A stretch of DNA of 49,225 nt from Octopus bimaculoides (Eukaryota): NCBI RefSeq assembly GCF_001194135.2, contig NC_068981.1:33782444-33831668 (forward strand), read 5' to 3'. This document shows positions 3,135 through 32,157 of the stretch, piece by piece; position 1 is the stretch's first letter; each line of letters starts with the position of its first letter. The notes beneath the pieces are model-generated. The model saw nothing but the letters and a program-made list of their open reading frames with translations, was not told where the DNA came from and searched no databases. The position numbers and the translations under genes are program-made.

Positions 3135-3834
3135 GCAAGCTTCTATGACAGTTTGGCTTCCTGCTTGGACGGGAGATACCCTTATCTGGCTTGCTCAATT
3201 AGAAGCAAATTTTGCAGCAAACAGAATAACAACAGAGGCACAAAAGTATAACATTATGTTAAGTAACCAAACCGACTATAAAAAGTGGTGACTTCCCAAT
3301 GTGATCACGAAGATAAACCACCACATCATAAAAGTATTGACACTTGTGAAAAATAGATAAAATTTTCAATAGAAAATAGATGACAGTTTCATTACACAAA
3401 ATTTTATCAACAGAAATATTTGATATTAAATATGTTTAGCCCCTCTATGTTTACTCCCTTGTGGGCAATAAAAAAATAAGAAATATTTGATATTAAAAGT
3501 TGAAGGAAAACGAACGCTGAAGAAATAAACAATAATAGTTATAAGAAGTTTTAACTGCACTTTCTAGCAAATTAAAATTATATTTCACTAAGAGCAAAAT
3601 TTTCTTTTTGATAAGTATAATACATATTTGAATGGAAGAAAATATTAAAGAGTTTGAAATGTCTTATTTTGATAGAGGATATATGCAAGCTTCTATGACA
3701 GTTTTGCCTCTTGCTTAGACGGGAGATACCCATATCTGGTTTGCTCAATTAGAAGCAAGTTTCGCAGCAAACAGAATAACAACAGAGGCACAAAAGTATA
3801 ACATTATGTTAAGTAACCAAACTGACTATAAAAA
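3135..3834 (+). mobile_element. Two direct copies (3135-3282, 3686-3834) of a Ty3/Gypsy gag-like fragment
   Basis: LPAWTGDTLIWLAQLEANFAANRITTEAQKYNIML resembles the gag N-terminal pattern P.FW...P..WF.Q.E..F...IT.E..KY. Confidence 0.6.
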
Positions 3835-3983: not shown

Positions 3984-6168
3984 CTGTATAGAGAAAAAAA
4001 AATTTTATATCAGGAGATATTCATTGTCATAACCGAAAAAAGTATTCACACATAACATTTCTCACATGAAAAAGGGTTGATGTTATTTTAATAAGGATCT
4101 ATGAGAAGGGATGACATGATTTCAAAACAGTTCTTTGAGAGAGGGTGATGTAATTTTAAGATGGATCTACAAGAGGAATTGAGGTGACTTTAATATAGAT
4201 CTTGAAGAGATGATGGAAATTAATATAGAGTAAGATTATACTGAAAGTTTAAAAAGAATGAAAGGTAACTCTCACATTAAAATCCAATGAAGGACTAATC
4301 AAACAGCATGATGACTCAGTAAAACTGAAATACCATATCAGCATGGCTGGAGCCTGTTAGCAGATGATGACCATGGAATATGGTGAAAGGGAGTTATGTA
4401 TCTTGCTATGTACCTATGTTATCTCACCAGTCTAGGGATTTTCATTGATTGATTAAAAAAACTAATGTTGTAGTTAGCAAAACACAAAGTGGTGGATCAG
4501 AAGCTGATGTAGGTTTTGACTGTAAGTGTGATACTGTCAGCCAATGGAAATCATTATGATAGAAATGGTGAATTGCATTAACTTTGTTTATGTTGTTGGC
4601 ATATCACTGAAAATAAGTGTTTCTCCTGCTAGAGTTAACTAAAGTTGTAACAAATAAAATATGGTATGAAGATGATGAACCAGAACCTGAAAACCTTCAA
4701 TGTGAAATATAGTTTTTGAAGAAGGTGTATCATTCCAGACATGAAAACAATGCTATATCGTGACATATACTTGCTCCAAGAAATGTCAACAGCTGCTAAA
4801 AGGTTTCTATTTTATTACAAATGCAAGATTTTTTTTTCTGCTATAGGAAATGATACCACAAATTGAGAATTCTAGTTGTTCTATAACTTGTAGTTGTGAA
4901 CAGTAGAGTTAAGCAAGCACAGAACAAAGAATATTTTCATTATCTTCTATCTTTTACTTGTTTCAGTCATTAGACCGCAGCCATGCTGGGGCACCGCCTT
5001 GGAGAAGTTTCAAATATTTTTTCCTAGTCAAATCATCATCATCATTATCATCATCGTTTAACATCCGCTTTCCATGCTTCAGTTCTTTTCATGCAGAATG
5101 TGATAGTCAAAAGCTTCACTCACATTAGAGAAACAATTAACAGGATACGTTGATAAGATGTAGCAATAAGTGCAGCATTATCAGCAAACTAGAAGCCACA
5201 GAGCAAGGATGGCATCTGCATGGAACTGAAATTACCACAGACATGTTGCAACAAGAAACTAGGGCCAAGACACAACCTTCCTTCGTGTTGTTTGAAATGT
5301 TACATGACTCTGACCATGTCTCACACACACACAGAAGAAACGGCATAACTTTAAGACACAGGTGTGGCTATGTGGTCAGAAGTTTACTTCCTAACCACAT
5401 GGTTCCAGGTTTGGTTCCCTTGGGTGGAACTTTGAGCAAGTGTCTTCTACTATAGTCCCAGGCCAACTAAATCATTTGGAGTGGATTTAGTAGACAAAAA
5501 CTAAAGGAGACTTGTCGCATGTGTTATGTGTGTGTGTTTGGATGGGTGGATATGCTTCTTTATTAGGCACACAGGGCCAAACAGAAAGGGGACAAAATAC
5601 AATGTAGGGCTTTTCTTTTCAAGAAAAGAAAAAAAAAAAGAAAAAGAAAATTTTGATCAAAAGGGATCGTGAGAAAAAAATGGGGGGGGGTGCAATAGAA
5701 AGAGAGAGAGAGAGAAGATAGAAAGACACACCCAAAGACAAAAAATGGCTATGTGGTTAAGAAGTCCCACTTCTCAACCACTTGATTTCAGTTTCAGTCC
5801 CATCATGCAACACCTTGAGCAAGTATTTTGTACCACAGCTAAGCTGGCCCAATCCCAGTGAGTGTATTTGGTAGATGGAAGAAATAGGCCCAATGTGTGT
5901 GTGCATGCATACATGAGTGGGTGGGTGAGTGGCTTGTTTTGATATTGTGAGCCAACCACAGACAAGTCATACACATGTGGTATGGTTTGTTAGCTATCTT
6001 GCATGAAAACATGTTCCTATTTGAAGGATTAGGGGAAATATTTACCTTAATTAGAAACAGGTGATAGTTGGCAACTGGAAGGGTATCAGGCCATAGAATA
6101 TCTGCTTCAACAACATTCATCTGACCCATGCAAGCAAAATGAGGAGGACATAAAAACGATGATCATAA

Positions 6169-6722: not shown

Positions 6723-6815
6723 CTGAAAGGAAGAATAAATAATCTTATTAATAGTTCCATCAGTTATTGTCCAATAGTAGCAGGGGTATGGAGTCAGGGT
6801 TGATATAAATGTAGG

Positions 6816-7067
6816 AGACACGTAAAATACACCATTTCGAGCGTGGCCGTCGCCAGTACCCGCCTGACTGGCCCTTGTGCTGGTGGCGCGTAGAAGCACC
6901 CACTACACTCTCGGAGTGGTTGGTGTTAGGAAGGGCATCCAGCTGTAGAAACTCTGCCAAATCAGATTGGAGCCTGGTGTCGCCTTCTGGTCCACCAGTC
7001 CTCAGTCAAATTGTCCAACCCATGCTAGCATGGAAAGCGGACATTAAACGACGATGATGATGATGAT
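6816..7067 (+). mobile_element. RTE 3' end
   Basis: Family core plus (gat)n tail. Confidence 0.8.
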
Positions 7068-7678: not shown

Positions 7679-8125
7679 ATCATCATCATTTAACGTTCAA
7701 TCTCCATGCTGGCATGGGTTGGACAGATTGACCAGGGCTGGCAAGCTGGAAGGCTGCACCAGACCCCAGTCTGATTTGGCATGGTTTCTATGGCGGGATG
7801 TCCTTCCAAATGCCAACCACTCCGAGAGTGTAATGTGTGCTTTTATGTGCTGCTGGCATAGGAAACATTTGCGTGACACCAGTATCTGCCACAACTACAA
7901 TTTTACTTGGCTTGATGAGTCTTCTTCTCAAGCACGACATAATATCAAAGGTCTCAGTCATTGCTTCCATGAGGCCCAACACTCAAAAGGAGCTTAACTA
8001 CTTTGCCTCTGTGAGGCCAAACACTTGAAAGGTGCTTTTTACATGCCATTTACCTGATGCCAGCATCAGCCACAACTACGATTTCACTTGGCTTGACAGG
8101 TCTTCTCAAGCACAGCAGATTGCCA
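7679..8125 (-). mobile_element. Older RTE 3' region with ORF2-end remnants and internal duplication
   Basis: (cat)n tail, diverged core, two copies of gccacaactac...cttggcttga...ctcaagcac. Confidence 0.7.
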
Positions 8126-13268: not shown

Positions 13269-13878
13269 GGAGATTAAAAGAGAAAAAGATTTAAATTTTC
13301 ATTATACTTGAAAAAAATTGGGGTGGTCACGACTAGATTGACTTCGATCCTAAATTTGCTTGATAATGGGGCTGATTTAGGGATAAACAACAACTCTGAA
13401 TCATGTGCAGCAAATAATAACAAAATAAACAGAAGCCTAAGTGATGCTTTGATTTGTTAGAAATAGTAACCAAATCTCTCAAATTACAACCAAAAATCTT
13501 AGTAAAAAGAATAACAAATCATGCGGTCACGAGGGAACTGTGACGGGAAAAATGGGATGGTCACAGTTGAAATGTCTTTGATCACAGGTTTTTCGGAACT
13601 TTAGCTTATCAATGCCCGCTGATTCTGGGATGAAAACACATAATTCTATTAATGGCCGAGGTACCTAGCAAAACATCTCACTTTTGTAAATACTATGAAC
13701 ACACTAAATGAATACGTGTTCAGTTATCTTGCAAAGCTGAGTTCATCTTTCCGCAACACTAACGCAGCCAGTACGAAGTCTTCAACAGTGTTCGTTGAAC
13801 TGGACAGGGTGGAATTAGCCATAATTTTTTTTTTTTTCATCTAGTTAAATTTTATGTGAATTACTCGATGTAAATTCG

Positions 13879-14004
13879 GGTAAATTTTCAGATTAACACG
13901 CGCACGATTTTCACTAGGGTGTTAGGATTAGGGAATTGCGTCCCTAACCCTAATACCCTAACACTGTAGTGAAAATCGTGTGGGTGTTAATCTGAAAATT
14001 TACC
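13879..14004. mobile_element. Merlin-like MITE with telomeric repeats, copy 1
   Basis: TIR GGTAAATTTTCAGATTAACAC; perfect 8-bp TSD TAAATTCG (13871-13878 and 14005-14012). Confidence 0.85.
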
Positions 14005-14193
14005 TAAATTCGAATCAGTTTGAATACAATCCTATTTGTCATCATTCCGATTCTAGCAAAAATTATGGTCGTGACAGCTAATAAATGCCGTGTACAGTTA
14101 TTATTAGAGTCATCTCCCTTGATACTTTTTTTTATTTTATTTTTCTCAATTAATAATTTCAAGAAAGACAACTTTAGGAAATTGCTTTAAATA

Positions 14194-14203
14194 TTTTGGC
14201 GCG
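14194..14203 (+). promoter_or_regulatory. E2F-type element TTTTGGCGCG in the putative CDC7 promoter
   Basis: Exact TTTSSCGC consensus; a good donor TTG|GTAAGT at 14347 could end a non-coding first exon; CDC7 is an established E2F target in mammals. Confidence 0.5.
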
Positions 14204-14976
14204 ACATCTCTTATCATTTCGGTCGCTACGGTAATAACAGCTGAGGGAGATTCTATCCTCTTTTACTCTGTTCGTATTTCTCCATAATCTCCACGAATTT
14301 CGTTACTCCGTAGGCAATATTATTTAATATCTTTCGTAAAAAGTTGGTAAGTTCTATTTTTCGGTCATCTTGAATTCAAAATTTACTATTCTTAGTACTT
14401 AACATTCTTGTCCATACTCCGATTTGTTAAATACCATAATATATGTTTTCTTTGTTTAATGTTAATTTTTTTTGACGATATCATTTTATCTTTATTGTTT
14501 TCCTTGTAATTGGTATAATGAAAAAGGAATTATGTTTGTAACTCAAATATTAATACATAAATGTAAATCGACATTTTTTTCTGTTGACAAAATTATCACA
14601 TTTATAATACGTGAAATAATAAATCTAGTCGTTTAAGTCACATGTTTTGTTGAACTGCCAGTCTAAAGTCTTTCTTTGTACAACTTTTTTAAGGACATCT
14701 ATTTCTGAAGTAAACATATACAGTTTCTCGAGTACTAGACATAAAAACTATACTGTTATTGCTGTGGAGTCAAAGTAGAACAGAAAGAAAGAAAGAAAGA
14801 AAAAAAAAAAAATACGGTTGGTGGGTGGAGTTTTAAACTTTATTTTTGAACAGAATTTTACGCATAAAGACAGGCAGTATTAGTTTTATGGCATGTCTGA
14901 AGACCTATCACACTTTTATAAGTTGTAGTGTGATATTATAAGGTAAGTAGCAGAATCGTTACGTCAGACAGAATAC

Positions 14977-15121
14977 GGTAAATTTTCAGATTAATACCCG
15001 CACGATTTTCACTAGGGTGTTAGGGTTACGGTTAGGGTTTTAGGGTTAGGGAATTCCGTCCCTAACCCTAACCCTAAACACCCTAGTGAAAATTGTGCGG
15101 GTGTTGATCTGAAAATTTACC
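14977..15121. mobile_element. Merlin-like MITE with telomeric repeats, copy 2
   Basis: Same TIR; perfect 8-bp TSD CAGAATAC (14969-14976 and 15122-15129); TTAGGG and CCCTAA arrays in the stem. Confidence 0.88.
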
Positions 15122-15131
15122 CAGAATACTT

Positions 15132-15237
15132 ACTACTACTTAAATACAGAGGTCCCGACGCATCTACCGAACCCTAATCTATAACGAGTGTGCACTGTAA
15201 AAACTTTGCGTCGGGACCTCTATATTTAAGTAGTGCC
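15132..15237. mobile_element. Second MITE family (TIR GGCACTACTTAAATATAGAGGTCCCGACGCA; left end degenerate)
   Basis: About 28-bp inverted repeat; flanks GAATACTT and TAATACTT (7/8 match). Confidence 0.7.
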
Positions 15238-16347
15238 TAATACTTTACGGTATTTGTTCAAGTATTTTATGTTTTTGGTTCAAATCCTGTCGAGGTCAAC
15301 TTTGTTTTCCATCCTCCTCTGGCCAATTAGGATCTGTTCTCCCTCAAATTTCTGGCCTTGTACCTAATTTATTAAGAAACGAGATGGATTGGCGGACTTG
15401 TAAAGCGTCGAACAAAATGCTTTGCTGTATTTTTTCAGGCTCTTGATGTTTTAGGTTCAAATCCCGTCCTGGCCAACATTTCCTTTCATCCTCCTAGGGT
15501 TGATAAATGAAGTGCCAGTCAAGTTCTGTGGTTGAATATAACCGACGGTTCCCCTCTTTAGAAATTTCTAGCCTTATCTCTAAATTAGAAACAATTGCTT
15601 TATGTTTTCGACGCTTTCTTGCTAGTTCCTACTACACCAACTGGCGAACCCCTATTCCTGACGTGTGATCAGTATTGTGTAATCCTGTGTTAGAGTTTTG
15701 CTTTGCTGTGGTGATTGGTTCGTTATTTCTTGTGTTTGTGAGTCTTCTGTTTTGTAGAATATATATACTGTGAATTGTGTTATGTTGGGTAGTGAATATA
15801 TTTTGTATGTGTCGTGTTATTGGCGTTATGCGATTTAGTGTCGCACAGTAATATTATTTTACTTGTACCAGGCATTTGACTACGGCCATGCTGGAGCACT
15901 GCCTTCAATGCATTTTTTTGAAAAAATTTTAACTGGGGTGGAGGGGTGAAATAAATTTTTTTTTGTATATTCGTAATCTCCGACATCTAAAATGTAGGAA
16001 TACGAAAACAAATTTTTTTTTTAATGCATTTTACAAGGGGAGGTACGAAATTGCATTAGCCCCCTTTTTTTAGTTGAACAAATCGACCCCAGCGCTTATT
16101 CTATGTAAGCCTAGTATTTATTCCATCAGTCTGTTTTGCTGAACCACTAAGCTGGTTGTCAAGCGGTAATGGGGGACAAACACACACACTCACAAGACTT
16201 TGGTCAGCCTGAGGCTATAGTAAAAGGCACTTGCCCAAAGTGCCACGCAGTGGGACTGAACACAGAACTGTGTGGTTGAGAAGCAAGCTTCTTACCACAC
16301 AGCCATTGTGTATAGTCTATGGTGATGTGTGTGTAGAATGGGAGTAG

Positions 16348-16720
16348 TCATCATCATCATTTAACGTCCGCTTTCCATGCTAGCATGGGTTGGACGATTT
16401 GACTGAAGATTGGTAAGCTAGAAGGCTGCACCAGGCTCCAATCTGATTTGGCAGAGTTTCTACAGCTGGATGCCCTTCCTAATGCCAACCATCCCAAGAG
16501 TGTAGTGGGTGCTTTTACGTGCCACTGGCACGAAGGCCAGTCAGGCGGTACTGGCAACGGCCACGCTCAAAATGGTGTATTTTACGGGCCACCTGCACAG
16601 GAGCCAGTCCAGCGGCACTGGCAATGATCTCACTCAAATGTCTTTTCACATTCCACTGGCACAAGTGCCAGTAAGGTGATGCTGGTAACGATCACGCTCA
16701 AATGGTGCTATTTACGCGTT
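16348..16720 (-). mobile_element. RTE 3' end with several 3'-UTR modules
   Basis: Family core plus repeated gccagtaccgcctgactggc modules. Confidence 0.85.
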
Positions 16721-17566: not shown

Positions 17567-18090
17567 GGCCTAGTGGCTAGGATGTTGGACTCCTGGTTAT
17601 AAGATTGTGGTTTCAATTCTTGGACTGGATGATGCTGTGTATTCTTGAGCAAAACACCTCATTTCACATTGTTGCAGTCCACACATCATCATCATCATCG
17701 TTTTACATCCACTTTCCATGCTAGCATGGGTTGGGCGATTCGACTGAGGACTGGTGAACCAGATGGCTACACCAGGCTCCAATCTGATTTGGCAGAGTTT
17801 CTAAGGCTGGATGCCCTTCCTAACGCCAACCACTCTGAGAGTGTAGTGGGTGCTTTTACGTGCCACCAGCACGAAGGCCAGTCAGGCGGTACTGGCAACG
17901 GCCATGTTCAAAATGGTGTATTTTATGTGCCACCTGCACAGGAGCCAGTCCAGAGGCACTGGCAATGACCTCGCTGACTAATCCTGTGATGGACCAGTAT
18001 CCCATCCAAGGGGTAAATCTATATAAGCCACAGAAACTGGGAAACCGGCCCTTATGAGTTCATAAGGCTCAAGAAGGGGGCTTTATCCAT
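17567..18090 (+). mobile_element. tRNA-derived SINE interrupted by the RTE at 17684-17975; related minus copy at about 8345-8550
   Basis: A-box tggcctagtgg and B-box-like ggtttcaattc; body cctgtgatggaccagtatcccatccaagggg...cagaaactgggaaaccggccc. Confidence 0.65.
17684..17975 (-). mobile_element. RTE 3' end nested in a tRNA-SINE
   Basis: Family core; the host SINE continues on both sides. Confidence 0.8.
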
Positions 18091-18292
18091 ATACTGACTT
18101 ATTAATCCTGGTAACTATTTTATTAATTAACTATACAAAGGACAACATTGTCGTGAATATTTCTCTAAATATACTGACTATTGAAAGGAAAACAATTTAA
18201 TTTTGGATTGTTATGTTACTCCTAAAAATATTAAGTGCTGTACTGTAAATCTTTCACTCATAGTTTACCAGTCTGAAGTAAGAAACTAAAAA

Positions 18293-18344
18293 ATGTCCAC
18301 TTCTACTGACAACAAGGATGAGTTACCTGCTGAGGAAATGCCAG
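18293..18344 (+). CDS. CDC7: CDC7 coding exon 1 (MSTSTDNKDELPAEEMP)
   Basis: ATG with A at -3 and an in-frame TAA two codons upstream; donor CAG|GTATGT; phase 1 matches exon 2. The N-terminus is not conserved, so support is structural only. Confidence 0.7.
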
Positions 18345-18904
18345 GTATGTTAAAGCTTTACTTGTTCATTTTTAGTTAATCTTCAGATTAAATCTGTAAT
18401 ATGATATATTGGATATTCTGTGTTTAAAGCTATGTAAAATGTTTTTGTTTTATGTGGTATCCATTTATTTCAGTGCTTATGAGTGTAGTTAGAGAGAAAA
18501 ACTTTACCTAATAAAAGCTTTGGTGATGGGTTGTTGTGAACATTTGTGGAAAGAAAACTCCTTTGTTAATTAAAACATACTTATTAGTTGAAAATGGAGA
18601 AATATAGAATCTGACAATTTATCCCTCAGATTGTTCACAGCAGTTTTCTGTTGTTTTTTCTTCTATCTTCTAGTCTTGGATTTGCTGTTCGCATCCATTG
18701 GTAACTTGGACAAATATACATATAAAATCAGTGCTGCATAAGTTATTAAATGTAGAAGCTCCAAATTATTTGTAGCTTCTACATTGTATACGCCTGCACA
18801 CACACACACCCCGGGTGTTTGGGCTAGATTTAACAGTTTGCATAAAAGGAAAAGAAAACACAATATCTCATCCCAAAATAAAAGAATTTTAAAAAAAATA
18901 AGAA

Positions 18905-19400
18905 GATAACAACTAAATTATTGCTGGGAGATAACAGTTTACTAAAAGTATTTGCCCTCAACTTCCACCACAGCCTCATAGTGACTGCAGAATCTGGCAC
19001 AGGAGTTCCTCACATGTCCCTGGGAAGATCTTTTGACACTTCTTTGATCTTGGCCACTAGCCTGGCCTTGGAGTTTCTGGCGAAGCAGTTGGTGTCTTTC
19101 TCAACCATGTCCTACACTTAGTAATCCATGGGATTACAATTGGGAAAATTAGGAGGCCTAAAATTGGGGCTGATGAAGTTGTAGAAATTCTCCAACAACC
19201 ACTTCTGATTCTTTCCAGAGGTGTGGCAAGGAGCTAAATCCTGCTCCTACACATTTCCTTTTCTAGCAGCAACCCTCTCCAGCTAGGGATTGATCATAGT
19301 CTCCAGTAGCTTCACATAGCCATCTGAATTGAGCCTAAGCCCCTGTTCAAAGATGTGGGATGAATTCCAGTGTGTGGAAACAATCAGAATGCCTGCTGCA
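18905..19400 (-). mobile_element. maT-type (DD37D) transposase fossil
   Basis: EQDLAPCHTSGKNQKWLLENFYNFISPNFRPPNFPNCNPMDY: 37 residues between the two Asp; ends EAVVEVEGKYF. Confidence 0.85.
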
Positions 19401-19731
19401 TCTCTTCTGCTGGCCATGGCTTTGTAGTCTCCACTACAACTGTCCATCTCAAGTCTTACAGCATTTTCAGGGTTCACAGAATGGTGAGTAGCAGTCATCA
19501 TGTTGGAATTTTGATAGCTGGGTGTGAATCATCATGACACAGGAAACTTTTCCAGCATCCAGATGATTTATATCTATACGTACCCGCATGGGAAGAAGTT
19601 TGCTTCCAAACTGCATGGTTCTGGGTTCAATCCCATTGCATGGCACCTTGGGCACGTGTCTTCTACTGTAACCTCAGGCCAACCAAAGCTTTGTGAGTGG
19701 ATTTTGTAGATGGAAACTGAAAGAAGCCTGT

Positions 19732-19739
<8 letters not shown>

Positions 19740-19804
<65 letters not shown>
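19740..19804. repeat. (AT)n microsatellite
   Basis: Direct reading. Confidence 0.95.
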
Positions 19805-19806
<2 letters not shown>

Positions 19807-20040
19807 TCATCATCATCATTGTTTAATGTCTGCTTTCCATGCTGGCATGGGTTGGACAGTTTAACTGAAAACTGGTAAGCCAAGAGGCTGCACCAGGCTC
19901 CAATCTGATCTGGCAAGGTTTCTACAGCTGAATGCCCTTCCTAATGCCAACCACTGCGAGAGTGTAGTGTAGTGGGTGCTTTTTATGTGCCACCGGCACG
20001 TGGGCCAGTCTGGTGGCACTGGCATTGACCATGTGTTTTT
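19804..20040 (-). mobile_element. RTE 3' end
   Basis: (cat)n tail next to (AT)n; family core. Confidence 0.8.
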
Positions 20041-20354
20041 GTCCCTCACCAGTGCTGGTATGTTTGTGTTCCTGTAACTTAGAGATTTGGCAAAAGGGAC
20101 CAATAGAATAAGTACCAGGCTTTAAAAAAAAATTATTAGGGTCAATTTATTTGACATAAAATTCGTCAAGGAAGTGCCCCAGCATGGCTACAGTTAAAAA
20201 AAAAACAGCTTGTACATACATGCTTAGATAGATGTATGGTTGACATTGATTGATGGAAGCTTACGGTGATATTCTAATGTTAATTGTTTTAACAATCAGG
20301 TAAATTCATAATTATGATTAAAATTCTGTTTTTTTTTTTTTTATATATATACAG

Positions 20355-20441
20355 AACATATACGAACAGAGATTGAAAAGTTGTATGGGTTTCTCCCGGA
20401 ACTTAAAAAGTATTTTCAAGTTATCAAAAAGATCGGTGAAG
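20355..20441 (+). CDS. CDC7: CDC7 exon 2 (EHIRTEIEKLYGFLPELKKYFQVIKKIGEG)
   Basis: tacag acceptor after a poly-T tract, G|GTATTT donor; matches human [25 protein letters not shown]. Confidence 0.95.
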
Positions 20442-20599
20442 GTATTTATAATTTTTCATGATAATTCTTAGCATTTGAAAGAACATGTGATAACAAAAAA
20501 CAACAAAAGAACAAAGCAAAAAACAAACTTTGTTCCTGTTATACAAATTCTAATGAATTTCATTTAGCCATGTCTTTGAATCGTTGTACGGTGATAATT

Positions 20600-21030
20600 T
20601 TTAGCAAGTGGAGGTGTGATTACAGACTGGCTGTGTAATATGTTGATTAAAATAAAAAAGTGCTGATCTCTAACTGTGGAGGGAACCTGTGGAAGAGGTA
20701 GACCCAAGAAGACATGGGACAAGGTGGTGAAGCATGATCTTTGAACATTGGGCCTCACAGAGCCAATGACAAATGACCAAGACCCGTCAAGCCAAGTGGA
20801 ACCATAGTCGTAGCCAATGCTGGTGTCACATAACAGGCACTCGTGTCAGTGGCACATAAAAAGGACCCATTACACTCTTGGAGTGGTTGGCGTTAGGAAG
20901 GACATACAGCCGTAGAAAGCATGCCAAATCAGATTGGAACCTGGTGCAACTCCCCATCTTACCAATTTCAGTCAAATCGTCTAACCCATGCCAGCATGGA
21001 AAGCAGATACTAAATGATGATGATGGTTAT
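20600..21030 (+). mobile_element. RTE LINE ORF2 C-terminus plus 3' UTR and tail
   Basis: Reads LTVEGTCGRGRPKKTWDKVVKHDL*TLGLTE, then the family tail. Confidence 0.8.
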
Positions 21031-22418
21031 GATTATTATGAAGAAAACCAGTTTGGATGACCTGATTTATATTTATAAATGTCTCTTGTGGGGTAATGCC
21101 AATAATTTCTGCCTAAACAAATCAATGATTCATTAGTAGCTGATTGAATAAAGCATTTCAATATTTTTTCTTGTCACCGGTGCCATATGTAATGCACCCA
21201 TGCCAGTGCCATGAGTAAAGCACCTGTACTGGTGCCATGTGTTAAGCACCCATGCTGGCGCCACGTAAAAAACACCCAGTACCCTCTGTAAAATGGTTAG
21301 GGTAAAAACCATACCAAAACAAACAGTTGGAGCCTAATACAGTTCTCTGACTGGCAAGCTCCTGTTGAATTGTCCAACCCATGCCAGCATGGAAAATGGA
21401 CATTAAATGATGATGATGTCTTCAACTGTAAACAGTTCTTGTTTAGCCATCGGACAGTTCTAATCAATGATGCCTGTGTATGAAGTGTGATTTTGTATGG
21501 TAGCAAGAAATGGGGCCTGAATATGGAAATAATTTGTTGTGGCAGATTTTCTATGGCTGGATGTCCTTCCTGTTCCCTATAGTTGGACATGTTTTCACAC
21601 AAGATTGGAAACAAAGGACACTGCTTGCAAGACATTAACATCATTGTCGTCATTGTTTAATGTCTGCTTTCCATGCTGGCATGGGTTTGACGGTTTGACA
21701 TGGAGCTGACTAGCAGAGAGATGTCTGGACTCCAACTGTCTGTTGTGACATGGTTTCTAAGGCTCAATGGCCCTCTTAATGTTAACCACTTAGCAGTGTG
21801 CTGGGTGCTTTTTACATGCCACTGGCATGGGTACAGTAATGCAGCATCGGCATGGGTGCTTTTTAAGTGACACCGGCACCTGAAAGGACAAGCCTATATA
21901 TGTGGAAGACAGCAATTTTACTTAGCTTGATCCATCTTACTAAGTACAGCAAATCGCCACATCTCTGGGCCCCTTGTCATTTCTTCAGCGAGGCCCAGTG
22001 TTCAAAGATTCTTTCCCACTACTTCGTCTCACATCTTCCTGGGTCTACCCCTTCCACAGGTAACATTTGTTTATAACTATCATTTGATATCAAAACAAGG
22101 AGATACAAACACACACACACACACACAAGATTTGTAGAAAATCTGCCTCGACAATTTCCATTTGACCCAAGTGATTATGGAAAAGTGGATGCTAAATGAT
22201 GATGATGATCCATCTCTCATCTACTTGACATCACTTAATCCTGAAGATCTTAAGAGAAAAAAAGAAAGACGTTAAGAACATAAGGATAATCTATCATCTC
22301 ACATGAGAAATTAATAAATGTTGCCTTAATTATTTATTGTTGATACATAAATAGGGATATCACTTCATTTTCTTTAAACCTAATTTAATATAATGAGTAA
22401 ATAAATTTTCAATTACAG

Positions 22419-22554
22419 GTACTTTCAGTTCTGTTTTCCAAGCAAAATTACGCGAGTACCCCAAAGTGAGTAGGCTGTTTGCTCTGAAACACATCATTCC
22501 CACTAGCCATCCAATGAGAATTGAAACTGAACTAAAATGCCTTCAGGAACTAGG
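22419..22554 (+). CDS. CDC7: CDC7 exon 3 (GTFSSVFQAKL...FALKHIIPTSHPMRIETELKCLQELG)
   Basis: Gly-rich loop, catalytic Lys (ALKH) and the CDC7-specific PTSHP motif; ttacag / GG|GTAATA, phase 1/2. Confidence 0.97.
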
Positions 22555-24556
22555 GTAATATGATATTTTATTTAAATTGAATATTTTCATGTTTTTAAGT
22601 AAAAGATGAGCTCCTCAATGAGACAAATTCACAACTTGGTTTCATTTTGTTTTTCAAGTAGCCTAAATGTCGTTTGATCTCAACAGCATTTTTTGTTCCT
22701 CAGTAAGAAGTAATTATTTTTGTTTCTACTGCCAACTTCAACCAGGCTCAATTGTCTCACTCTTATCACCTATATTGTATCTGGCTTTTTATGTATATTC
22801 TAGATTTATCTAGTTCTGTGGTTTGCACTAATGTTCTTGGGTAATAATGGTGCCTGAGATAGGTGGTACCAGTCTAAACATTACAATATTTTATTTTTCC
22901 CTTCTTGGTTCTAGCTTAAAAACTTCCTGGGGTTGATTATTTGCCTGTTATCTCTCTGGGGGTCAATAAAATATCTAATATATTCTCTCTGATTTACTTG
23001 AATAGTGTTCTAACAAAACATTTCTTTTACTTAAATAATGATTTAGTATAAAGATGAACTGGTTTAGTAGTCTTTGTAAGGTTACTTGCTCTGTTAGAAA
23101 CAACTGTCAAATCTTCCTCTTGTACTTCCTCTACAGCAAAACATTTGTTTCTTTCTCTCTGTCTGACTATAACCTTTCATCATTTGATACAAGATCACCT
23201 CCTCCAGTGCCCTCTCCCCTCTTGAAAGTTTTTTTTTTGTCTTGCAAGTTCTTGGGGACCCTGTCAGTGCAGGTGCCACTTAAATGCACCCAGTCCATAC
23301 TGTAAAGTGGTTGGTGTTCGGAAGGGCATCCAGCTGTAAAAACCTTGCCAAAACAGTTACAGAAGTCTGGTGCTGAAACCGTCCCACTCATGCTAGCATG
23401 GAAGGCAGACACTAAACGATGATGATGATCACTGTTGACCATTAAAAAATGGACCTATTAGATATTGTAGTTCTAGATCACTGGTTCTCAACCATTTTTT
23501 TCCTATGGATCTTTTTGATTCCTATTTTGTTCTACTGGACCCCCATTGACATTTGTTGGTTAAAAAAATTCCCATTATATATTTATAATTAAATGCTATG
23601 AATTGTATAACAAGTATAGTTGAAATATTTTGTGCGTTGTAGAAATATAACCGATTTATTGCACATAATTCTTAACAATAACATCTTATATGGACCCATA
23701 AGGGGGTCCAGATTGACTCATTTGACTAGTGGAAGAAACTTTCCCAAGGTGCTGCACAGTAGGGCTGAACACATGTGCTTGCAAAGTGAGCTTCTTAAGC
23801 AAATACTTATGACTGTGCCCAGAAAAGTATATCACTTCCCCCGTGGGGAATTGAAACGTGGTCTGCTGTATGACAGACGCGGATACTTACCACTATTCAA
23901 CTGAAGATTTGATAAAATTACCTGGTCTCTTTATATCTAACTATGAAATCAATATTTTGTAGTTGAAAGGCAGTGAGCCGGCTGAATTGCTACTGTGCTG
24001 GAAAAAATATTTAGCAGTATTTCTTCCAACTTATGCTCTGAGTTCAAATGCTGCTGGGATCAGCTTTGCCTTTCATCCTTCCGGGGTCGATCGACTTAGT
24101 CCCTCCCCGAAAATTACTAGCCTTGTGCCAGAATTTGAATCTAATATTTCTTGGTTGAGAAATACTTGACAACACAAATGATGTAATTAAGAAATTTTCT
24201 TCCATGGACACGTAAAAAGCACTATCCGAATGTGATCAAATCAGGGCCGCCTGACTGGCTCCTGTGCCAGTGGCATGTAAAAAGCACCCACTACACTCTC
24301 AGAGTGGTTGGCATTAGGAAGAGCATCCAGCTGTAGAAACAGTGCCAGATCAGATTGGAGCCTGGTGCAGCCGCTGGCTTTCCAGACCTCAATCAAACCA
24401 TCCGACCCATGCCAGCATGGAAAATGGACGTTAAACAATGATGGTGATGAGACAAAGAGAAAGTCTACAAAAAGATATCTAAGATTGTTTTTTTTTCTTT
24501 GTAGTTTTTCTCAATTGTTTTGTAATTCTTGGCATTTGTCCCATTCTCTATTTCAG

Positions 24557-24650
24557 TGGCAAAAACAATGTTATGGGTGTGGAGCTGTGTCTTCGAAATA
24601 AGGACCATATTGTGATTGGAATGCCATATTTCTACCATGACAAACTTCAG
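24557..24650 (+). CDS. CDC7: CDC7 exon 4 (GKNNVMGVELCLRNKDHIVIGMPYFYHDKLQ)
   Basis: ctctatttcag / CAG|GTAACT, phase 2/0; matches human [24 protein letters not shown]. Confidence 0.96.
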
Positions 24651-25584
24651 GTAACTACCACTGGTTGATGATTTTTTTTTTGCTGTTACTATAACTCTAA
24701 TAGTTCTAAATACTGCCAAAAAACTTTTCCGTGTTGGCATGAGTTGGACAGAATTTGTTGAGGTGGGTTTTCTTTGGCTGGATCTTCCTGTTACCAATCC
24801 TCTACTGTTTCCAAGCAGGGTAATATTTCCCAATGGCCAGATATGTTTCAAGATAAGGTTACACACACACACACATCATACATATACGACAGGCTTCTTT
24901 CAGTTTTTGTCTACCAGATCCATCCTCAAGACTTTGGCTGACCTAGCACCATAGTGGAAGACACTTGCCCAAGTTGCTATGTGGTGGGACTGATCCTGAA
25001 ACCCTGTGGTTGGGGAGCAAACATATCCACACAGCCACGCCAGGGCCTATTAGACTTAAAATCTGGGAGTTGATTGAAACTACAACATCACCCTCTCTCT
25101 ATAAAAACTGTCAAGGTCTCTGTGTGTTAAATCATTATTTTTCTATTTTTTATGAAAATTGTGATTCGACAGAATTAGTAGAGCAGTCGATAAAATGCTT
25201 TGTGAAGGCACATAGCTTTGTGATTAGAGTATTTGGTTTAATTCCTGGTGGCATGGCACATTGTGTCCTTGGGCATGACACTTGATTTCACCTTACTCCT
25301 GTCCACTCAGCTGGCAAAATTGAGTTGTACCTGTAATTGAAAAGGGCCAGTTTTGCCATATTCTGTGTCATGCTGAATCTCTCTGAGAACTACATTAAGG
25401 GTATGCATATATATGCATACCCACAGATGTGGAGTACTCAGTCACTTGCATGTTAATTTCATGAGCAGGCTGTTCCATTGGTCAGATCAACTGGAAAACT
25501 CATCATTGTAATCGACAGACTACCTGTCAGATAAAATGCTTTGTGATATTGAGTTATGTATCTTTCCATCTTGAGACAACTGCG

Positions 25585-26388
25585 CTGGTATGGTCATGTA
25601 TTGTGAATGAATGAGGACAGCTGTGTGAAAAATGTCACACCCTAGCAGTTGAGGGAACCTGTGGAAGAGGCAGACCCAGGAAGACTTGGGATGAGGTGAT
25701 GAAGCACGACTTTTGAACATTAGGCCTTACCGAGGCAATGACTACTGACCGAGACCTTTGGAGATGTGCTGTGCTTGAGAAGACCCAGCAAGCCAAGTGA
25801 GACCATAAACCTGTGGCCTTTGCCAGTGGGTGTAACCAGCCCACTTATGAGTACCCCTCATTCATTGGACAATAAACTTTGTTTCGAAGACCTGTTGTGA
25901 CAAGTGAAATCAAAANNNNNNNNNNNNNNNNNNNNNNNNNNNNNNNNNNNNNNNNNNNNNNNNNNNNNNNNNNNNNNNNNNNNNNNNNNNNNNNNNNNNN
26001 NNNNNNNNNNNNNNNNNNNNNNNNGTGTGATTTTTGCCAGGGTCGCTGATTGGCTCCCGTGCTGGTGGTACGTAAAAAACACCACTCAAGCATGTTCGTT
26101 GCCAGCGTTGCTTAACTGGCACATGTGCCGGTGGCATGTGAAAAAGCAACATTCGAGCGTGGTCATTGCCAGTGCCGCTGGACTGGCCCTCGTGCCAGTG
26201 GCATGTAAAAGCATCCACTACACTCTCAGAGTGGTTGATATTTGGAAGGGCATCCAGCTATAAATACTTTGCCAGATCAGATTGGAGCCTGGTGCAGCCT
26301 TCTGGCTTACCAGTCCTCTGTCAAACCGTCCAACCCACGCCAACATGGAAAGTGGATGTTAAGCGACAACGATGACGATGATGATGAG
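25585..26388 (+). mobile_element. RTE LINE ORF2 C-terminus and, across the gap, 3' UTR and tail
   Basis: LRWYGHVL...[19 protein letters not shown]...TDRDLWRCAVLEKTQQAK*, typical of an RTE-clade ORF2 end; tail at 26025-26388. Confidence 0.82.
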
Positions 26389-26602
26389 GAATTAAAATTC
26401 TATAGGTGTTTACTTTGCTTTTAATGTTCAGGTATCAATAAAATAAGCACCAGTTAAGTACTGGGTTGAATTAGGCTGGAACTTGTTAATTTTCCATTCC
26501 TCATTGTTTTATTTATTTACTTATTTGTTAACCATTTAATGGATTCCATAATTTAATGTTAATGTAATACTAATCTTTAATGGGTTTCCATATTATTTCC
26601 AG

Positions 26603-26745
26603 GATTGTTTGACATCTTTAACTCCTAAAGAAATCCAATGCTATATGAAAAATTTATTAATTGCTTTAAGTCATGTTCATGAATATGATATTATCCACCG
26701 TGATGTGAAACCCAGCAATTTCTTGTTTAACCGTAAAACACAACA
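26603..26745 (+). CDS. CDC7: CDC7 exon 5 (DCLTSL...IIHRDVKPSNFLFNRKTQ)
   Basis: Catalytic loop HRDVKPSN; tatttccag / CA|GTGAGT, phase 0/2. Confidence 0.97.
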
Positions 26746-27084
26746 GTGAGTAAATGTTTCCCTTTTCCTACAAGACCCATTAAGGGGGTGAGCTGGCAGA
26801 ATTGTTAGCATGCCAGGCAAAATGCTTAGCAGCATTTGTCTCTATGTTCTGAGTTCAAATTCAACTGAGGTCAACTTTGCCTTTCATCCTTTCAGGGTTG
26901 GTGTAAAATGTACCAGTTGAACACTGGGGTCGATGTAAACGTCTTGGACCCTTTCCCAAAACTGCTAGCCTTGTGCCAAAATCTGAAACCATTATTATTA
27001 TTATTATTAATAATTGATCATACTGGCACAAGTCCCATTATCTGCTTTAGCATGGTTTCTATAGCTGGATGTTCTCAATGTTGT

Positions 27085-27463
27085 TGGCATTCCGTCGCTT
27101 ACAACGTCGAGGGTTCCAGTTGATCCGATCAACGGAACAGCCTGCTCGTGAAATTAACGTGCAAGTGGCTGAGCACTCCACAGACACGTGTACCCTTAAC
27201 GTAGTTCTCGGAGATATTCAGCGTGACACAGTGTGACAAGGCTGACCCTTTGAATTACAGGCACAACAGAAACAGGATGTAAGAGTGAGAGAAAGCTGTG
27301 GTGAAAGAGTACAGCAGGGTTCGCCACCATCCCCTGCCAGAGCCTCGTGGAGCTTTAGGTGTTTTCACTCAATAAACACTCACAACGCCCGATCTGGGAA
27401 TTGAAACCGCGATCCTATGACCGCGAGTCCGCTGCCCTAACCACTGGGCCATTGCGCCTCCAC
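27085..27463 (-). mobile_element. tRNA-derived SINE, full length; partial copies at about 25215-25520 and 28130-28290
   Basis: Reverse complement of the 37708-38068 element; A-box TGGCCCAGTGG, B-box GGTTTCAATTCC. Confidence 0.85.
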
Positions 27464-27549
27464 TGTTCTTAATACCAACCATTTTATAAGAGTGTATTGG
27501 GTGTTTTTTTTTTTTTGTGGCAAGTACTCAGGCTCTTACAAATACTTAG

Positions 27550-27690
27550 GGAATCCCCTTGAAGTAGTCAATAGCTTCTGTTACCTAGGTTACCTGATTA
27601 ACAGTAGCAGAAAGCGGTCTGAAAGCATAGTCCGAACAAGAACATAATGGGAAAAGTTTAAGGAGTTTATTACTTCTGTTGGTAACAAGC
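27550..27690 (+). mobile_element. RTE reverse-transcriptase fragment
   Basis: LEVVNSFCYLGYLI resembles the F-x-YLG RT motif of RTE elements. Confidence 0.6.
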
Positions 27691-27793
27691 ATTGAAAAAT
27701 GAGCATAAAATTAAGATGATAATTATGATGTGGACTGTATTTCATACTTTGCCTGTACTTCTGTTGTTGAAGATGTTATTTCTTATGTTTTAG

Positions 27794-27920
27794 GTTCTCG
27801 TTAGTGGATTTTGGTCTTGCTCACAAAGCACCTTTACCTTTGAAGGAAAATAAACTCAAATCTGATATACCCTCTCATCATTACTTTCCAGTCAGACGAA
27901 ATTTGAAAAGTACGTCAAAG
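27794..27920 (+). CDS. CDC7: CDC7 exon 6 (FSLVDFGLAHK...STSK; start of kinase insert 2)
   Basis: DFG motif; tgttttag / AAG|GTAAAT, phase 2/0. Confidence 0.95.
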
Positions 27921-29097
27921 GTAAATTTCCTTTTTATTTTCTATTTCCTATTTTCCATTTATTGTCTTGGTAGAGATAATTTCTTTTATTCTTACAGTTA
28001 GGCAGTGTCTATGACACTTTACAGGGCCTCCAGGAATGGTGAGAGAGAGAGAGAGAGAAGGTATCCTCAGACTGGAGATTGGCCAAAATTCTTGCAATAA
28101 AGTGCACTCCATTCTCACTGGCACTCTGTTGGTTGTCACAATGTGGGTTCCAGCTGATCCAATCAATGGAACAGCCTGTTCACGAAACTAATGCACAAGT
28201 GGCTGAGCACTCCACAGACACATGTAGCCTTAATATAGTTCTCGGGGAGATTTAGTGTGAGGCAGAGCATGACAAGGCCGACCCAGCTGAGTGGACTGGA
28301 GCAATGAGAAATAAAGTGTCTTGCTCAAGGACACAACGTGCTGCCAAATATCAAACTCATGACCTTATAATTGTAAGCTGAATACTCTAACCACGAAGCC
28401 ATGTACCTTCACTGGACTCCATTAATGACATTGAAGGTGTGAGGTGGTCATGTTTAAATCGGGCGACAGTTTATGTCAGTTGCTCATGTAAGTCATGATG
28501 AGAATTGAACTTATAAAGTTCCAATCTGTTACCCTAGATTGGTACTTTTTCTGATGGAATCCTCCACCTCAAAATAGAGGAAAGGTAAAAATTGATCTTG
28601 GAGGATTAGACATCAGAACATAGAAATTTGGAACAAATACTACAAGGCATTCTATCTGATACTCCAAAGACTCTGTTATTTTTATTTTCTGCAGCTCTAA
28701 AAATTATTTTGTGTTGTGGGAAATAATTTGTTTGTAGAATACCTGCTAAATCCTGTGTTAACTCCTTAATTATATGTTCAGAGATCTCTAATTAAATGAA
28801 GTTCATACGTCTTCAAACAACAATATATATCAGTGGTATGTTTTAAAAAAGAGGAAACAAAGTCATGTGATGCATTTTGTCTAGTATGAGGCTTTTAACT
28901 AATAATTTTTAACAGCCACATAAAGCTTCAGATTTGACTTTATTTTACTGACCTCAGAAAAATCTAAGCTGAAAACTTTGTGAGACAAAACTGAATACTG
29001 GAGGATATTTAGACTGACTTTCTGTCTTTTCTGCTATGAAACTTTTTACTTTATTCATAATAGGATAGGCAGAAACAGTAGGGTATCAAAGTAAATA

Positions 29098-29325
29098 TTG
29101 GGTTGTCTGGAAAGTTTGTGCCGATTTATAGTAGCTTACCTTTCGACTTATTTGCCATGAAAACACCTCAGTTCTGGGAAGAGGGTATTTTCAAGTTAAA
29201 GGAAAGATGGAAACGCATTGTGCAACAAAATGGTTCATATTTGGTTGATTAAAAATGTAATGGCAAGTATTTGTTGACCTTTTTATTTCCTTTAAAAATC
29301 GGCACAAACTTTCCGGACAACCCAA
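29098..29325 (+). mobile_element. Internally deleted mariner (228-bp MITE)
   Basis: TA TSDs (29096-29097, 29326-29327); TIRs ttgggttgtc(t/c)ggaaagtttgtgccgattt; residual FWEEGIFKLKERWKRIVQQNGSYLVD*. Confidence 0.92.
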
Positions 29326-29469
29326 TACTTAACTCCATTCATGATTCAAGTTCATATTGTAAATGTTACAGTATTATGATAGATTCAGTCAAATTCTCAA
29401 TAAATTTGTGGCTTTGTGACAATATAAAAAAACATTTTATGTGCTACTTTTTTTTACCTTATTTAACAG

Positions 29470-29794
29470 CATGGTTTGAAAAGTATTCCAACAAGTGATA
29501 AATGTGGTCAAAGGACTGCCAAGAATTCCACTGTATTTTCTACCCAGTCTCCTCAACAGCGATTGCTCATAAAACAGGCTGCAGTTAAAGTCAATCANNN
29601 NNNNNNNGTCAAAGGACTGCCAAGAATTCCACTGTATTTTCTACCCAGTCTCCTCGACAGCGATTGCTCATAAAACAGGCTGCAGTTAAAGTCAATCACA
29701 ATGTTGCATCATCAAATCAACACAGTGGCATCTCAGCTGCTCATACTTGTCGATGTTTTGGAAAACCCATGATCTGTCATATTTGTTCAGAGAG
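29470..29794 (+). CDS. CDC7: CDC7 exon 7 (kinase insert 2, ending TCRCFGKPMICHICSER); contains a 10-N gap and a 91-bp artefactual duplication, true length about 224 nt
   Basis: ttaacag / AG|GTAAAT; C-x-C-x6-C-x2-C zinc motif spaced like human CDCYATDKVCSIC; frame restored by removing 101 nt (10 N plus one 91-nt copy). Confidence 0.88.
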
Positions 29795-30475
29795 GTAAAT
29801 AGAAAAGGGTAAAGCCTTCTTTTGTTTGGTCAGTTAGTCATTTTACTTACATTTTTTCCATGTTTGCATCGGATGGACAGAACCTTATTTCAAGATGGCA
29901 TTTTACAACTTCAGTATTCTTCCTGCTATCAACTCTTACTTGTTTCTCGAGTAAGGAGTTCTTTTAGTTCTCTTAAGGTTTTTGAAAGCGCTGAGTGACT
30001 GGTTGTAGTGTCAACAGAGAATGTAAACATCACATCACCTTTTTGCTTATGTTGTGATAAGTGCAGACATGGAATGTCAACATTATCACACACACACACA
30101 CACACACAAAAAAAACATACATACATACATGCACAGGTTTACACACATACATAATGGGCTTTTATACAGTTTTCATTTAACAGATCCACTCACAAGGCAT
30201 TGGTTGGCCTCAAGTTATATGAATCATTTTCATTTAAGATCTGCCTTCCATGCTGGCATGGGTTGGACGGTTTGACAGGAACTGGCCAGGCAGAAGCCTG
30301 CACCAGACTTCTGTATTTGTTTTGGCATGGTTGTTACGGCTGGATGCCTTTCCTAACACCAACCACCCCACAAAGTAAACTAGTCTGGTGGTCACAAGAA
30401 TTTGAAGTTTCTACTCATAAATTAGTGCAGAACATCAAAGTAGACTGAGGCATGTAGAATTAAAGTTCCCTATTA

Positions 30476-31361
30476 CACTGAACCGCAAAAGAAACGCGAT
30501 TTTTTTCAAATGTCATTTTTATATGGTAAATTCTGAAAATTTATTTCGATGATGTAAATATTCCAAGACATGCTGGTTTATGGCTGGTACCCAAATTGCA
30601 GGTCACCTTTCAGTTTTCCCTGAAATGAGACGCCAAAACGCATCTCTGCTGAATGCTGTGGGTGACAATCGCAAACAATTGTCATGGAAACCAAAATGCA
30701 TGTGAATCTCGTGGAAGTTATGGGTATGAAAATCAACTTGAACCATGTTCCTAGCAATCGTAATTTGGATGCATCAGGTATGACCTGATTGTCAGCAGTG
30801 CAGAGAGAACAAGCTATCGGCTGATTGCAAGCAGAGCAGCATGCCCTGGTTGTTGCGAAAGCTTATAATTTCCATATCAGCACCATCTATTGCCTGCAAC
30901 AGCGATACAACAGCACCGACAGCACTGCAGACATGCCTTCAGAGGGCACCCCTGGGTGACCATGCCGTGGTTGGCTCTCGGCCCGGATTTGAACCCAATC
31001 AAACACCTGTGGGATGAAATCCAGGGATTGTGGAACCAGGTGGTCCCAAAGCCGACAACTCATGTGGAACTGGAGGCAGCTTTCCTCAGGGTATGGGCAC
31101 AGGTGCCAATGGCTTTTGTGAACCGCCTCATGCACTCCATATACTGACGGTGTATGGCCATTTTGAACACCCAGGGAGGGCATACACGGTATTGAACATA
31201 TCACGCCCTACAATCTCGATGTGTTGGATCCACCCACTACTAGAACATATAACAACGACCCATAGAAACTGACTTTATCAGATTTATCAAAATTAAAACA
31301 TAATGAAATTAAAACATATTTCACAGTCACACACGCCTCGCGTTTCTTTTGCGGTTCAGTG
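30476..31361 (+). mobile_element. Internally deleted Tc1 element (886 bp)
   Basis: TA TSDs; TIR CACTGAACCGCAAAAGAAACGCGA; HTH remnant REQAIG*LQA and catalytic-end remnant PWLALGPDLNPIKHLWDEI. Confidence 0.92.
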
Positions 31362-31469
31362 TATATACACACTTTGAAATGTTCTGGGTATAAACACCTG
31401 ATATATATTTCTGGCAGCCCATTTTTATTTTGTACATACTTCTACTTTGTAATATAAATTCTTATTTGA

Positions 31470-31616
<147 letters not shown>

Positions 31617-31996: not shown

Positions 31997-32157
31997 ATGT
32001 AGCTCGAAACGGCAAAGACTTTCCGTATTCCCGAGCGTCATACTAATACATCCTTTTGTTATTTACACCACCTGTCCTCGTCTGTTGTTGTTTTTTCGTA
32101 TATTCTCCTATATATATATATGTATATGTATGTATGTATGTATGTATGTATATATAT

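Follow-up and report, generated by a model that had tools for sequence, protein, structure and literature searches.

A hairpin-type transposable element with a telomere-like core, inserted twice near CDC7 in Octopus bimaculoides, and its provisional assignment to Merlin

Introduction

Merlin transposons are recognised by a conserved 5'-GG at both ends, by terminal repeats measuring 24-462 bp and by target duplications of 8-9 bp, and in a survey of these elements Octopus bimaculoides, with 191 Merlin transposase-like proteins, showed the top count of the protostomes named (PMC8101967). In cephalopods the only telomere motif determined experimentally is TTAGGG (PMC13218726, PMC6160780). Both subjects meet in a 49-kb stretch of O. 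bimaculoides DNA (contig NC_068981.1; hereafter the window, meaning the whole stretch of 49,225 nt), where two short palindromic elements of 126 and 145 bp with telomere-like cores lie upstream of the coding exons of the kinase gene CDC7. A first-pass annotation, made from the letters of the window alone, had described them as independent transpositions of a Merlin-type MITE (miniature inverted-repeat transposable element) built from telomere repeats, with one copy on either side of the putative CDC7 promoter.

In the present study the window was scanned, the region 13600-15400 was examined letter by letter, and the elements were compared with Merlin insertions delimited in Octopus. Two sister species, O. 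vulgaris (L052) and O. sinensis (L053), were also included; their orthologous loci were reached through the CDC7 protein cluster and align with the window on both sides of each element.

Results

Structure of the two copies

The elements and their flanks comprise the following features, none of which has a strand assigned:

13871..13878: left target-site duplication of copy 1, TAAATTCG; single at the orthologous empty site (L052 5509-5516, L053 5472-5479)
13879..14004: MITE copy 1 (126 bp), whose terminal repeats occupy 13879-13896 and 13987-14004
14005..14012: right target-site duplication of copy 1, TAAATTCG, a perfect 8-mer
14969..14976: left target-site duplication of copy 2, CAGAATAC; single at the empty site (L052 6876-6883, L053 6812-6819)
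14977..15121: MITE copy 2 (145 bp), whose terminal repeats occupy 14977-14994 and, with 1 mismatch, 15104-15121
15122..15129: right target-site duplication of copy 2, CAGAATAC, a perfect 8-mer

The 18-nt terminal repeat GGTAAATTTTCAGATTAA occurs four times in the 49 kb, each time at an element end, where 0.17 occurrences would be expected by chance. Its sole mismatch is found at the right end of copy 2, and paired ends agree at 35 of 36 arm positions. The termini read GGTAAA... and ...TTTACC, that is, with a 5'-GG, and the boundaries are exact, as a shift of either one by a single base destroys the 8-bp duplication. Both copies are near-perfect palindromes, which as single-stranded DNA form one long hairpin each, with minimum free energies of -51.6 kcal/mol (z = -15.9) for copy 1 and -60.6 kcal/mol (z = -14.8) for copy 2. 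The consensus of the four arms (48 nt) is GGTAAATTTTCAGATTAACACCCGCACGATTTTCACTAGGGTGTTAGG, from which individual arms depart by 1-4 of 48 substitutions. Coordinates, lengths, common ends and separate perfect 8-bp duplications are thus exactly as the first-pass annotation gave them, and folding and arm sequences agree with its layout of TTAGGG in the left arm and CCCTAA in the right.

Coding capacity is absent from both copies, in which all six frames run into stops within at most 30 codons. Scans of the region with Rfam and for tRNAs gave no match, and a search of a protein collection with peptides read from the MITE, aimed at spurious open reading frames (ORFs) overlapping other copies, gave no candidate. 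A search for GGTAAATTTTCAGATTAA with up to four mismatches, and for the arm, covered the window plus 188 kb from O. vulgaris and O. sinensis and recovered nothing but the two copies of the window; matches of the 18-mer end at 46 loci in metagenome contigs and 1 locus in viral contigs were chance matches of 18-20 nt without a second end or internal similarity. The two copies belong to a single MITE family, that of a non-autonomous DNA transposon of the hairpin type.

Insertion history

Neither site is occupied in O. vulgaris or O. sinensis, whose uninterrupted targets hold a single 8-mer each: the site of copy 1 reads ...CTCGATG TAAATTCG AATCAGTT... and that of copy 2 ...CGGA CAGAATAC TTGGTACT... 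in both species. Single 8-mers at the empty sites of two sister species mean that both copies are genuine, independent insertions with 8-bp duplications; together with the different duplications they prove the independent transpositions that had been proposed from the letters alone. They also settle the question whether a transposon is present at all. As alternatives one might consider a palindrome arisen by chance, a hairpin-forming duplication of local origin or an artefact of the assembly, the more so as the assembly does contain artefacts elsewhere (for example an 88-bp duplication around a 10-N gap at 29598-29607). Near either copy, however, there are no N gaps, the end sequence is far above chance, flanks and perfect 8-bp duplications differ from one copy to the other, and the precise empty sites in two species already refute such an origin, so that it has practically no chance of being correct.

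Both copies were inserted separately in the O. bimaculoides lineage after its split from O. vulgaris and O. sinensis. Decay of the arms, at about 2-8%, is comparable in magnitude to neutral divergence between the species (identity 87-96%), which agrees with insertions that postdate the split, yet are not very recent.

The telomere-like core

The telomere-like part is confined to the central 54 nt of copy 1 (about 13915-13968) and the central 73 nt of copy 2 (about 15013-15085). The outer ~36 nt of each end, made up of the 18-nt terminal repeat and the subterminal CACCCGCACGATTTTCAC, are unrelated to telomere sequence. Copy 1 holds one exact TTAGGG and three CCCTAA (four exact hexamers), copy 2 four TTAGGG and three CCCTAA (seven), with two to three exact units in succession. 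Beside them stand degenerate units such as TTAGGA, TTACGG, TGTTAGGG and TTTTAGGG, and the centre is an 8-nt loop, AATTGCGT in copy 1 and AATTCCGT in copy 2. Unit number differs between the copies, as had been claimed, and likewise between the arms of copy 2, the left of which has two hexamer units more than the right. The description as an element built from telomere repeats therefore holds for the central 54-73 nt and is overstated for the whole, given the ~36 non-telomeric nt at each end and several degenerate units.

Within the window tandem hexamers of this kind are peculiar to the elements: all seven matches to (TTAGGG)2 with at most one mismatch lie inside them (7/7), where 0.16 would be expected. 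Both cores are tandem arrays of the host hexamer away from chromosome ends, as interstitial telomeric sequences are defined, and the motif taken as the host telomere repeat fits that of cephalopods (PMC13218726, PMC6160780). The G-strand of the hexamers points inward from both arms, which is the orientation of a telomere-telomere junction and bears out the earlier comparison with a telomere fusion. The left arm of copy 2 contains, as counted before, five GGG runs on one strand, and each strand of the copy has a G3N1-12 x4 motif (G4Hunter 1.24 and -1.48); the same motif, sought in copy 1, was not found there.

Two origins of this core have to be compared. The four arms are identical in consensus over at least 48 nt and switch to hexamers at the same point, for which the simplest reading is that they are copies of one long terminal repeat. 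The other origin would be true telomeric DNA, now spread by the family; such DNA would be a binding site for telomere-repeat proteins, would fold into cruciforms or G-quadruplexes and would act on nearby promoters or on chromosome fragility. It could have arisen by telomerase healing of broken transposon ends at the seed TAGGG (arm positions 37-41) with subsequent head-to-head fusion, or by telomerase extension of both ends of an internal gap, which were then joined. Such an origin would agree with the inward G-strand on both arms, with TTAGGG as the cephalopod telomere motif, with the G-quadruplex motifs on both strands of copy 2 and with the strong hairpin energies; moreover, in O. vulgaris and O. 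sinensis an unrelated MITE-like element only 5 bp away holds an array of telomere-like units (see below), which hints at a recurrent process. However, with 3-6 units per arm the arrays are very short, and they are degenerate; copy 1 lacks a quadruplex motif. A common switch position is predicted by a copied long terminal repeat and not by two independent breaks, so that the telomerase route requires two breaks at identical positions or a fold-back step. As to a function of the core, both insertions are absent from two congeners, which leaves no conserved role at this locus. We regard true telomeric DNA as an improbable source of the core. It is equally improbable that the core represents a genuine telomere-telomere junction by which palindromic interstitial telomere sequence is scattered into octopus gene starts; in that case the neighbouring MITE-like element would be a second instance, and cephalopod MITEs would repeatedly arise through repair assisted by telomerase.

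Comparison with Octopus Merlin elements

As a yardstick, loci of octopus Merlin proteins listed in the supplement of PMC8101967 were fetched, and four insertions were delimited, all in the O. sinensis assembly. They fall into two families:

L058 265-8996 and L060 252-8997: Merlin family F1, ~8.7 kb, terminal repeats of ~354 bp, ORF of 305 aa with PF12762
L061 5850-7209 and L063 9750-10784: Merlin family F2, a compact form of 1.0-1.4 kb (1.36 kb), terminal repeats of 106 bp

F1 elements have the ends GGCGATGTTTCG... and the duplications GCAAATCT and CAAGGCTT, F2 elements the ends GGCGATATCGTG... and the duplications GGATTTAG and CAGACTTT; all of these copies appear to be intact. F1, the copies of which are 98-99.6% identical, also has two inner inverted repeats of 344 bp (L058 638-981 and 5412-5755).

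All four delimited insertions (4/4) show 5'-GG ends, duplications of exactly 8 bp and long terminal repeats, and both MITE copies likewise combine a terminal 5'-GG with an 8-bp duplication. F1 and F2 were considered as autonomous partners and rejected, their end sequences being different from GGTAAATTTTCAGATTAA. The comparison covered these two families; a third is represented by L062, and ~190 O. bimaculoides Merlin genes are listed in PMC8101967. No Merlin remnant was detected when two O. bimaculoides Merlin proteins were searched by tblastn against the window and the orthologous loci. The Merlin type named in the first-pass annotation is thus supported by GG ends and 8-bp duplications, as described in PMC8101967 and as seen in Octopus, and lacks a transposase with matching ends in the two families compared; the sequence features lead us to a provisional assignment of the MITE family to Merlin, held with somewhat more confidence than doubt.

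The MITE, though real, might instead be mobilised by another superfamily (Mutator/Foldback-like, hAT, P or an undescribed group), in which case the hallmarks of Merlin would be coincidental. The failure of F1 and F2 to provide a partner with matching ends suits this explanation, as does the succession of terminal repeat, tandem units increasing inward and small loop, which resembles Foldback elements. The latter are placed with Mutator in Repbase, and duplications of Mutator/Foldback are typically 9-11 bp, as reported by Wicker et al. (2007), whereas both duplications observed here are exactly 8 bp. The ends of hAT elements begin with C/T-A and those of P with CA, unlike the GG of the MITE. 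For Ac the duplication consensus is nTnnnnAn, to which neither TAAATTCG nor CAGAATAC conforms, though both are 8 bp long. Nor do they conform to the Buster consensus nnnTAnnn, and CAGGGG of Mar may serve as an example of a hAT end (PMC3517528). Duplications of 8 bp as such are also produced by hAT and P (PMC3517528), and among the recently active families of O. vulgaris there are 21 of Mutator and 21 of hAT vs 2 of Merlin (PMC13282606). Against these figures stand the four delimited Merlin insertions of Octopus, all with GG ends and 8-bp duplications, and another superfamily appears to be an unlikely, if still arguable, supplier.

Gene context

The neighbouring gene features are:

13727..13822, - strand: first coding exon of a divergent WD40-repeat gene (MANSTLSSSTNTVEDF...; ATG = complement of 13820-13822), mapped and translated in three species
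14195..14202, + strand: E2F-like octamer TTTGGCGC between the copies, the single TTTSSCGC match in the window, with ~2 expected by chance
14205..14346, + strand: candidate non-coding CDC7 exon 1, its start coordinate a guess; donor G|GTAAGT (14347) conserved in three species
18264..18344, + strand: CDC7 start-codon exon (ATG at 18293), an exact match to the N-terminus of XP_014785246.1, preceded by the acceptor ...ctcatAG

The gene on the plus strand was identified as CDC7 by a search with the joined kinase exons, whose top match was O. bimaculoides XP_014785246.1; the exons extend from 18293 to 37095 and are 100% identical to that protein. The acceptor-like ...ctcatAG ahead of the ATG exon implies at least one non-coding CDC7 exon upstream. 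Acceptor, CpG peak and conserved donor together suggest that exon 1 and the promoter are situated near 14.2 kb. The observed/expected ratio of CpG reaches 1.5-1.6 at 14.0-14.6 kb, compared with 0.54 for the whole window and 0-0.5 from 16.2 kb on, in the gene body, a pattern in keeping with a 5' region that is unmethylated and a gene body that is methylated. E2F-like octamer and exon 1 donor are identical in O. vulgaris and O. sinensis; conservation around the candidate promoter is 87-96% throughout, by which the promoter is not singled out. The 5' regions of CDC7 transcript contigs of another species (L054-L057, protein 82% identical) gave no convincing alignment to the window.

The region is at the same time the promoter side of the divergent WD40 gene, which had been overlooked before. 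In the annotation of O. vulgaris (L052) it encodes a protein of 595 aa on the opposite strand, with the coding sequence ending at 5464. Before the insertions, the WD40 ATG and the candidate CDC7 start were separated by a divergent intergenic region of ~380 bp; copy 1 lies inside it and starts 56 bp upstream of the WD40 ATG. Copy 2 follows the candidate exon 1 donor at a distance of 630 bp and precedes the CDC7 ATG exon by 3.1 kb, and is hence probably located in CDC7 intron 1. The earlier picture of two copies bracketing the CDC7 promoter consequently needs to be modified: it stands for copy 1, which occupies the CpG-rich divergent region, and is weakened by the probable intronic position of copy 2 and by an exon 1 and promoter that are themselves predicted. 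The E2F motif reported between the copies is indeed there, and as the sole match in the window it does not exceed the number expected by chance.

O. vulgaris and O. sinensis carry a tRNA-derived short interspersed nuclear element (SINE) of their own in the WD40-CDC7 intergenic region, of ~400 bp (GGAGGCGCAATGGCCCAG...GGTTTCGATTCCC), which is not present in O. bimaculoides. By alignment it is placed as follows:

L052 about 5600-6005 and L053 about 5560-5955: SINE insertion of the sister species, at a position equivalent to about 14095 of the window

As this SINE shows, the intergenic region tolerates insertions.

Two further observations concern the genes themselves. The donor of WD40 exon 1 reads caagGTagc in O. 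vulgaris and O. sinensis vs caagATaac in O. bimaculoides, so that either another donor is used, or the difference is a base error or a real change. In a coding exon of CDC7 (29510-29697) the 10-N gap at 29598-29607 is bordered left and right by one 88-bp sequence, identical save for one substitution; it is a scaffold-joining artefact duplicating part of the exon.

Neighbouring repeats

An older palindromic element of 100 bp is situated at 15135-15234, 5 bp to the right of copy 2 (L052 about 6890-7000, L053 about 6826-6936). Its ends, CAGAGGTCCCGACGCA, are unlike those of the MITE and are flanked by TA within a palindromic ACTACTTAAA/TTTAAGTAGT context. It is present in all three species; the O. 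bimaculoides version is 25 bp shorter, and from the right end of the other two 17 bp are missing. The interior of these two, in O. vulgaris and O. sinensis, contains a one-directional array, CCCTTAA CCGTAA CCCTAA A CCCTAA GACTAA CCCTAA, so that telomere-like hexamers are found in two unrelated small elements at one locus. A short interstitial telomere-like tract was also noticed beside poly-A in the locus of the third Merlin family, where an A10 run is followed directly by TTAGGGTTAGGGTTAG (L062 about 3520-3550, - strand).

A highly repeated SINE-like family is spread over the window (e.g. 1-245, 1026-2035, 6763-7005, 7693-7997, 16348-16716, 17684-17975, 19803-20033 and 25910-26263) and also has many copies in the O. 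vulgaris and O. sinensis loci. It gives rise to spurious ORFs such as HHHHRLTSAFHASMGW...LQSDLAEFLQLDALPNANHSESVVGAFTCH and contains an internal 67-bp tandem repeat (16513-16638, 26034-26210). Remnants of a Mariner-like transposase (...FHQDNAQTHTA..., ...IAPTDYHLF...) at 845-1650 on the minus strand are broken by this SINE-like repeat. Two direct copies at 15239-15318 and 15416-15495, 76% identical and 177 bp apart, include a tRNA T-arm-like GGTTCAAATCC and are probably fragments of another SINE.

Discussion

Origin and spread of the MITE

The findings may be joined in one explanation, which we consider probable as a whole: a MITE supplied with transposase by Merlin, derived from terminal repeats only, inserted after the species split and placed in an open 5' region. 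A transposase acting in trans would recognise the GGTAAATTTTCAGATTAA ends and move the element by cut-and-paste, and a staggered cut of 8 bp at the target would result in the flanking duplication. The likeliest supplier would be a Merlin transposase (IS1016/IS1595-like DDE). The MITE itself may be a 'terminal-repeats-only' derivative of a Merlin with long terminal repeats, that is, two end copies of 50-70 nt around the 8-nt loop. The TAGGGTG(TTAGGG)n units would then have been part of the parental end, and later drift of their number by replication slippage is proposed as the cause of the unlike unit numbers between the copies and between the arms of copy 2. The landing zone is the CpG-rich, presumably open, divergent promoter region common to the WD40 gene and CDC7; two copies there would be expected from a preference for accessible 5' regions, as is usual for cut-and-paste elements, or from local hopping, rather than from a selected function.

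Several points weigh against this explanation. F1 and F2 begin with GGCGAT..., the MITE with GGTAAA..., and at most 11 of 18 positions agree (manual comparison, F1 right end). Duplications of 8 bp are known from hAT and P (PMC3517528) and from a few rarer superfamilies. Only two copies of the family were examined, and the 188 kb of O. vulgaris and O. sinensis DNA contain none. A parent with TTAGGG arrays already in its long terminal repeat is hypothetical, and two insertions within 1.1 kb could reflect selection instead of targeting.

Nothing indicates a function of the copies at this locus, the insertions being lineage-specific and the arrays short and degenerate, and with both insertions absent from two congeners no conserved function can be argued for. 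Recruitment of telomere proteins, extrusion of cruciforms and seeding of telomeres, as put forward in the first-pass annotation, are speculative. The potential for hairpins, cruciforms and quadruplexes is real on paper, as predicted from folding and motif counts, and a hairpin of -50 kcal/mol, if situated in a 5' UTR, would be expected to stop scanning ribosomes; the telomere-like cargo of the MITE is unusual and probably passive, and on present evidence it has no bearing on telomere biology or on the regulation of CDC7.

The value of the locus lies elsewhere. It offers a clean and dated example of MITE insertion in a cephalopod, with two proven empty sites in the shared 5' region of two housekeeping-type genes, and provisionally ties a MITE to the Merlin transposases, which are unusually abundant in O. 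bimaculoides. The head-to-head TTAGGG core is an uncommon cargo for a MITE. Should the family prove abundant, the genome would receive from it dispersed, short palindromes of telomere-like sequence, which could matter for genome stability, for errors in long-read sequencing and assembly and for the annotation of 'interstitial telomeres' in cephalopods.

Comparison with known systems

Full-text searches of the literature, with Repbase and Dfam not covered, brought up no MITE described as having a core of head-to-head TTAGGG units; single traits of the present one recur in several known systems. The Foldback (FB) elements of Drosophila and foldback-type MITEs are similar in that almost the whole element is one inverted repeat with a small loop and that the arms contain short tandem units whose number varies between copies and arms. 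Arms of FB extend over hundreds of bp, with units of 10-31 bp and duplications of 9 bp, whereas the MITE has arms of 60-70 nt, 6-bp units of the telomere motif and 8-bp duplications. Short interstitial telomeric sequences of vertebrates, which according to Nergadze et al. are reportedly made by telomerase during double-strand-break repair, also place a few TTAGGG units inside unique DNA, but are one-directional, immobile and devoid of terminal repeats and target duplications.

DTC84 of the bivalve Donax trunculus, a MITE with tandem repeats, is likewise a non-autonomous mollusc element with a central short tandem array of variable copy number; its core differs in having longer units plus a microsatellite, all in one direction, (PMC3879986), whereas that of the MITE described here consists of head-to-head telomere hexamers in a hairpin. 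Mobile carriers of the host telomere repeat are known in the ciliate transposons Oxytricha TBE1 and Tetrahymena Tel-1 and in the Penelope-like elements that end in telomere repeats (PMC4522978). There the repeats form the outer ends and have a role in end function or priming, while those of the MITE are central and enclosed by ordinary terminal repeats. The closest resemblance is to Merlin/IS1016 (Feschotte 2004, after the summary in PMC8101967), with its non-autonomous derivatives and its Octopus families F1 and F2: both have 5'-GG ends, target duplications of exactly 8 bp and terminal repeats that are long and symmetric, and the host genome abounds in Merlin transposase genes, whereas the MITE is set apart by the lack of a transposase, by ends that read GGTAAATTTTCAG... 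vs GGCGAT... and by a core of telomere-like hexamers, which F1 and F2 do not have.

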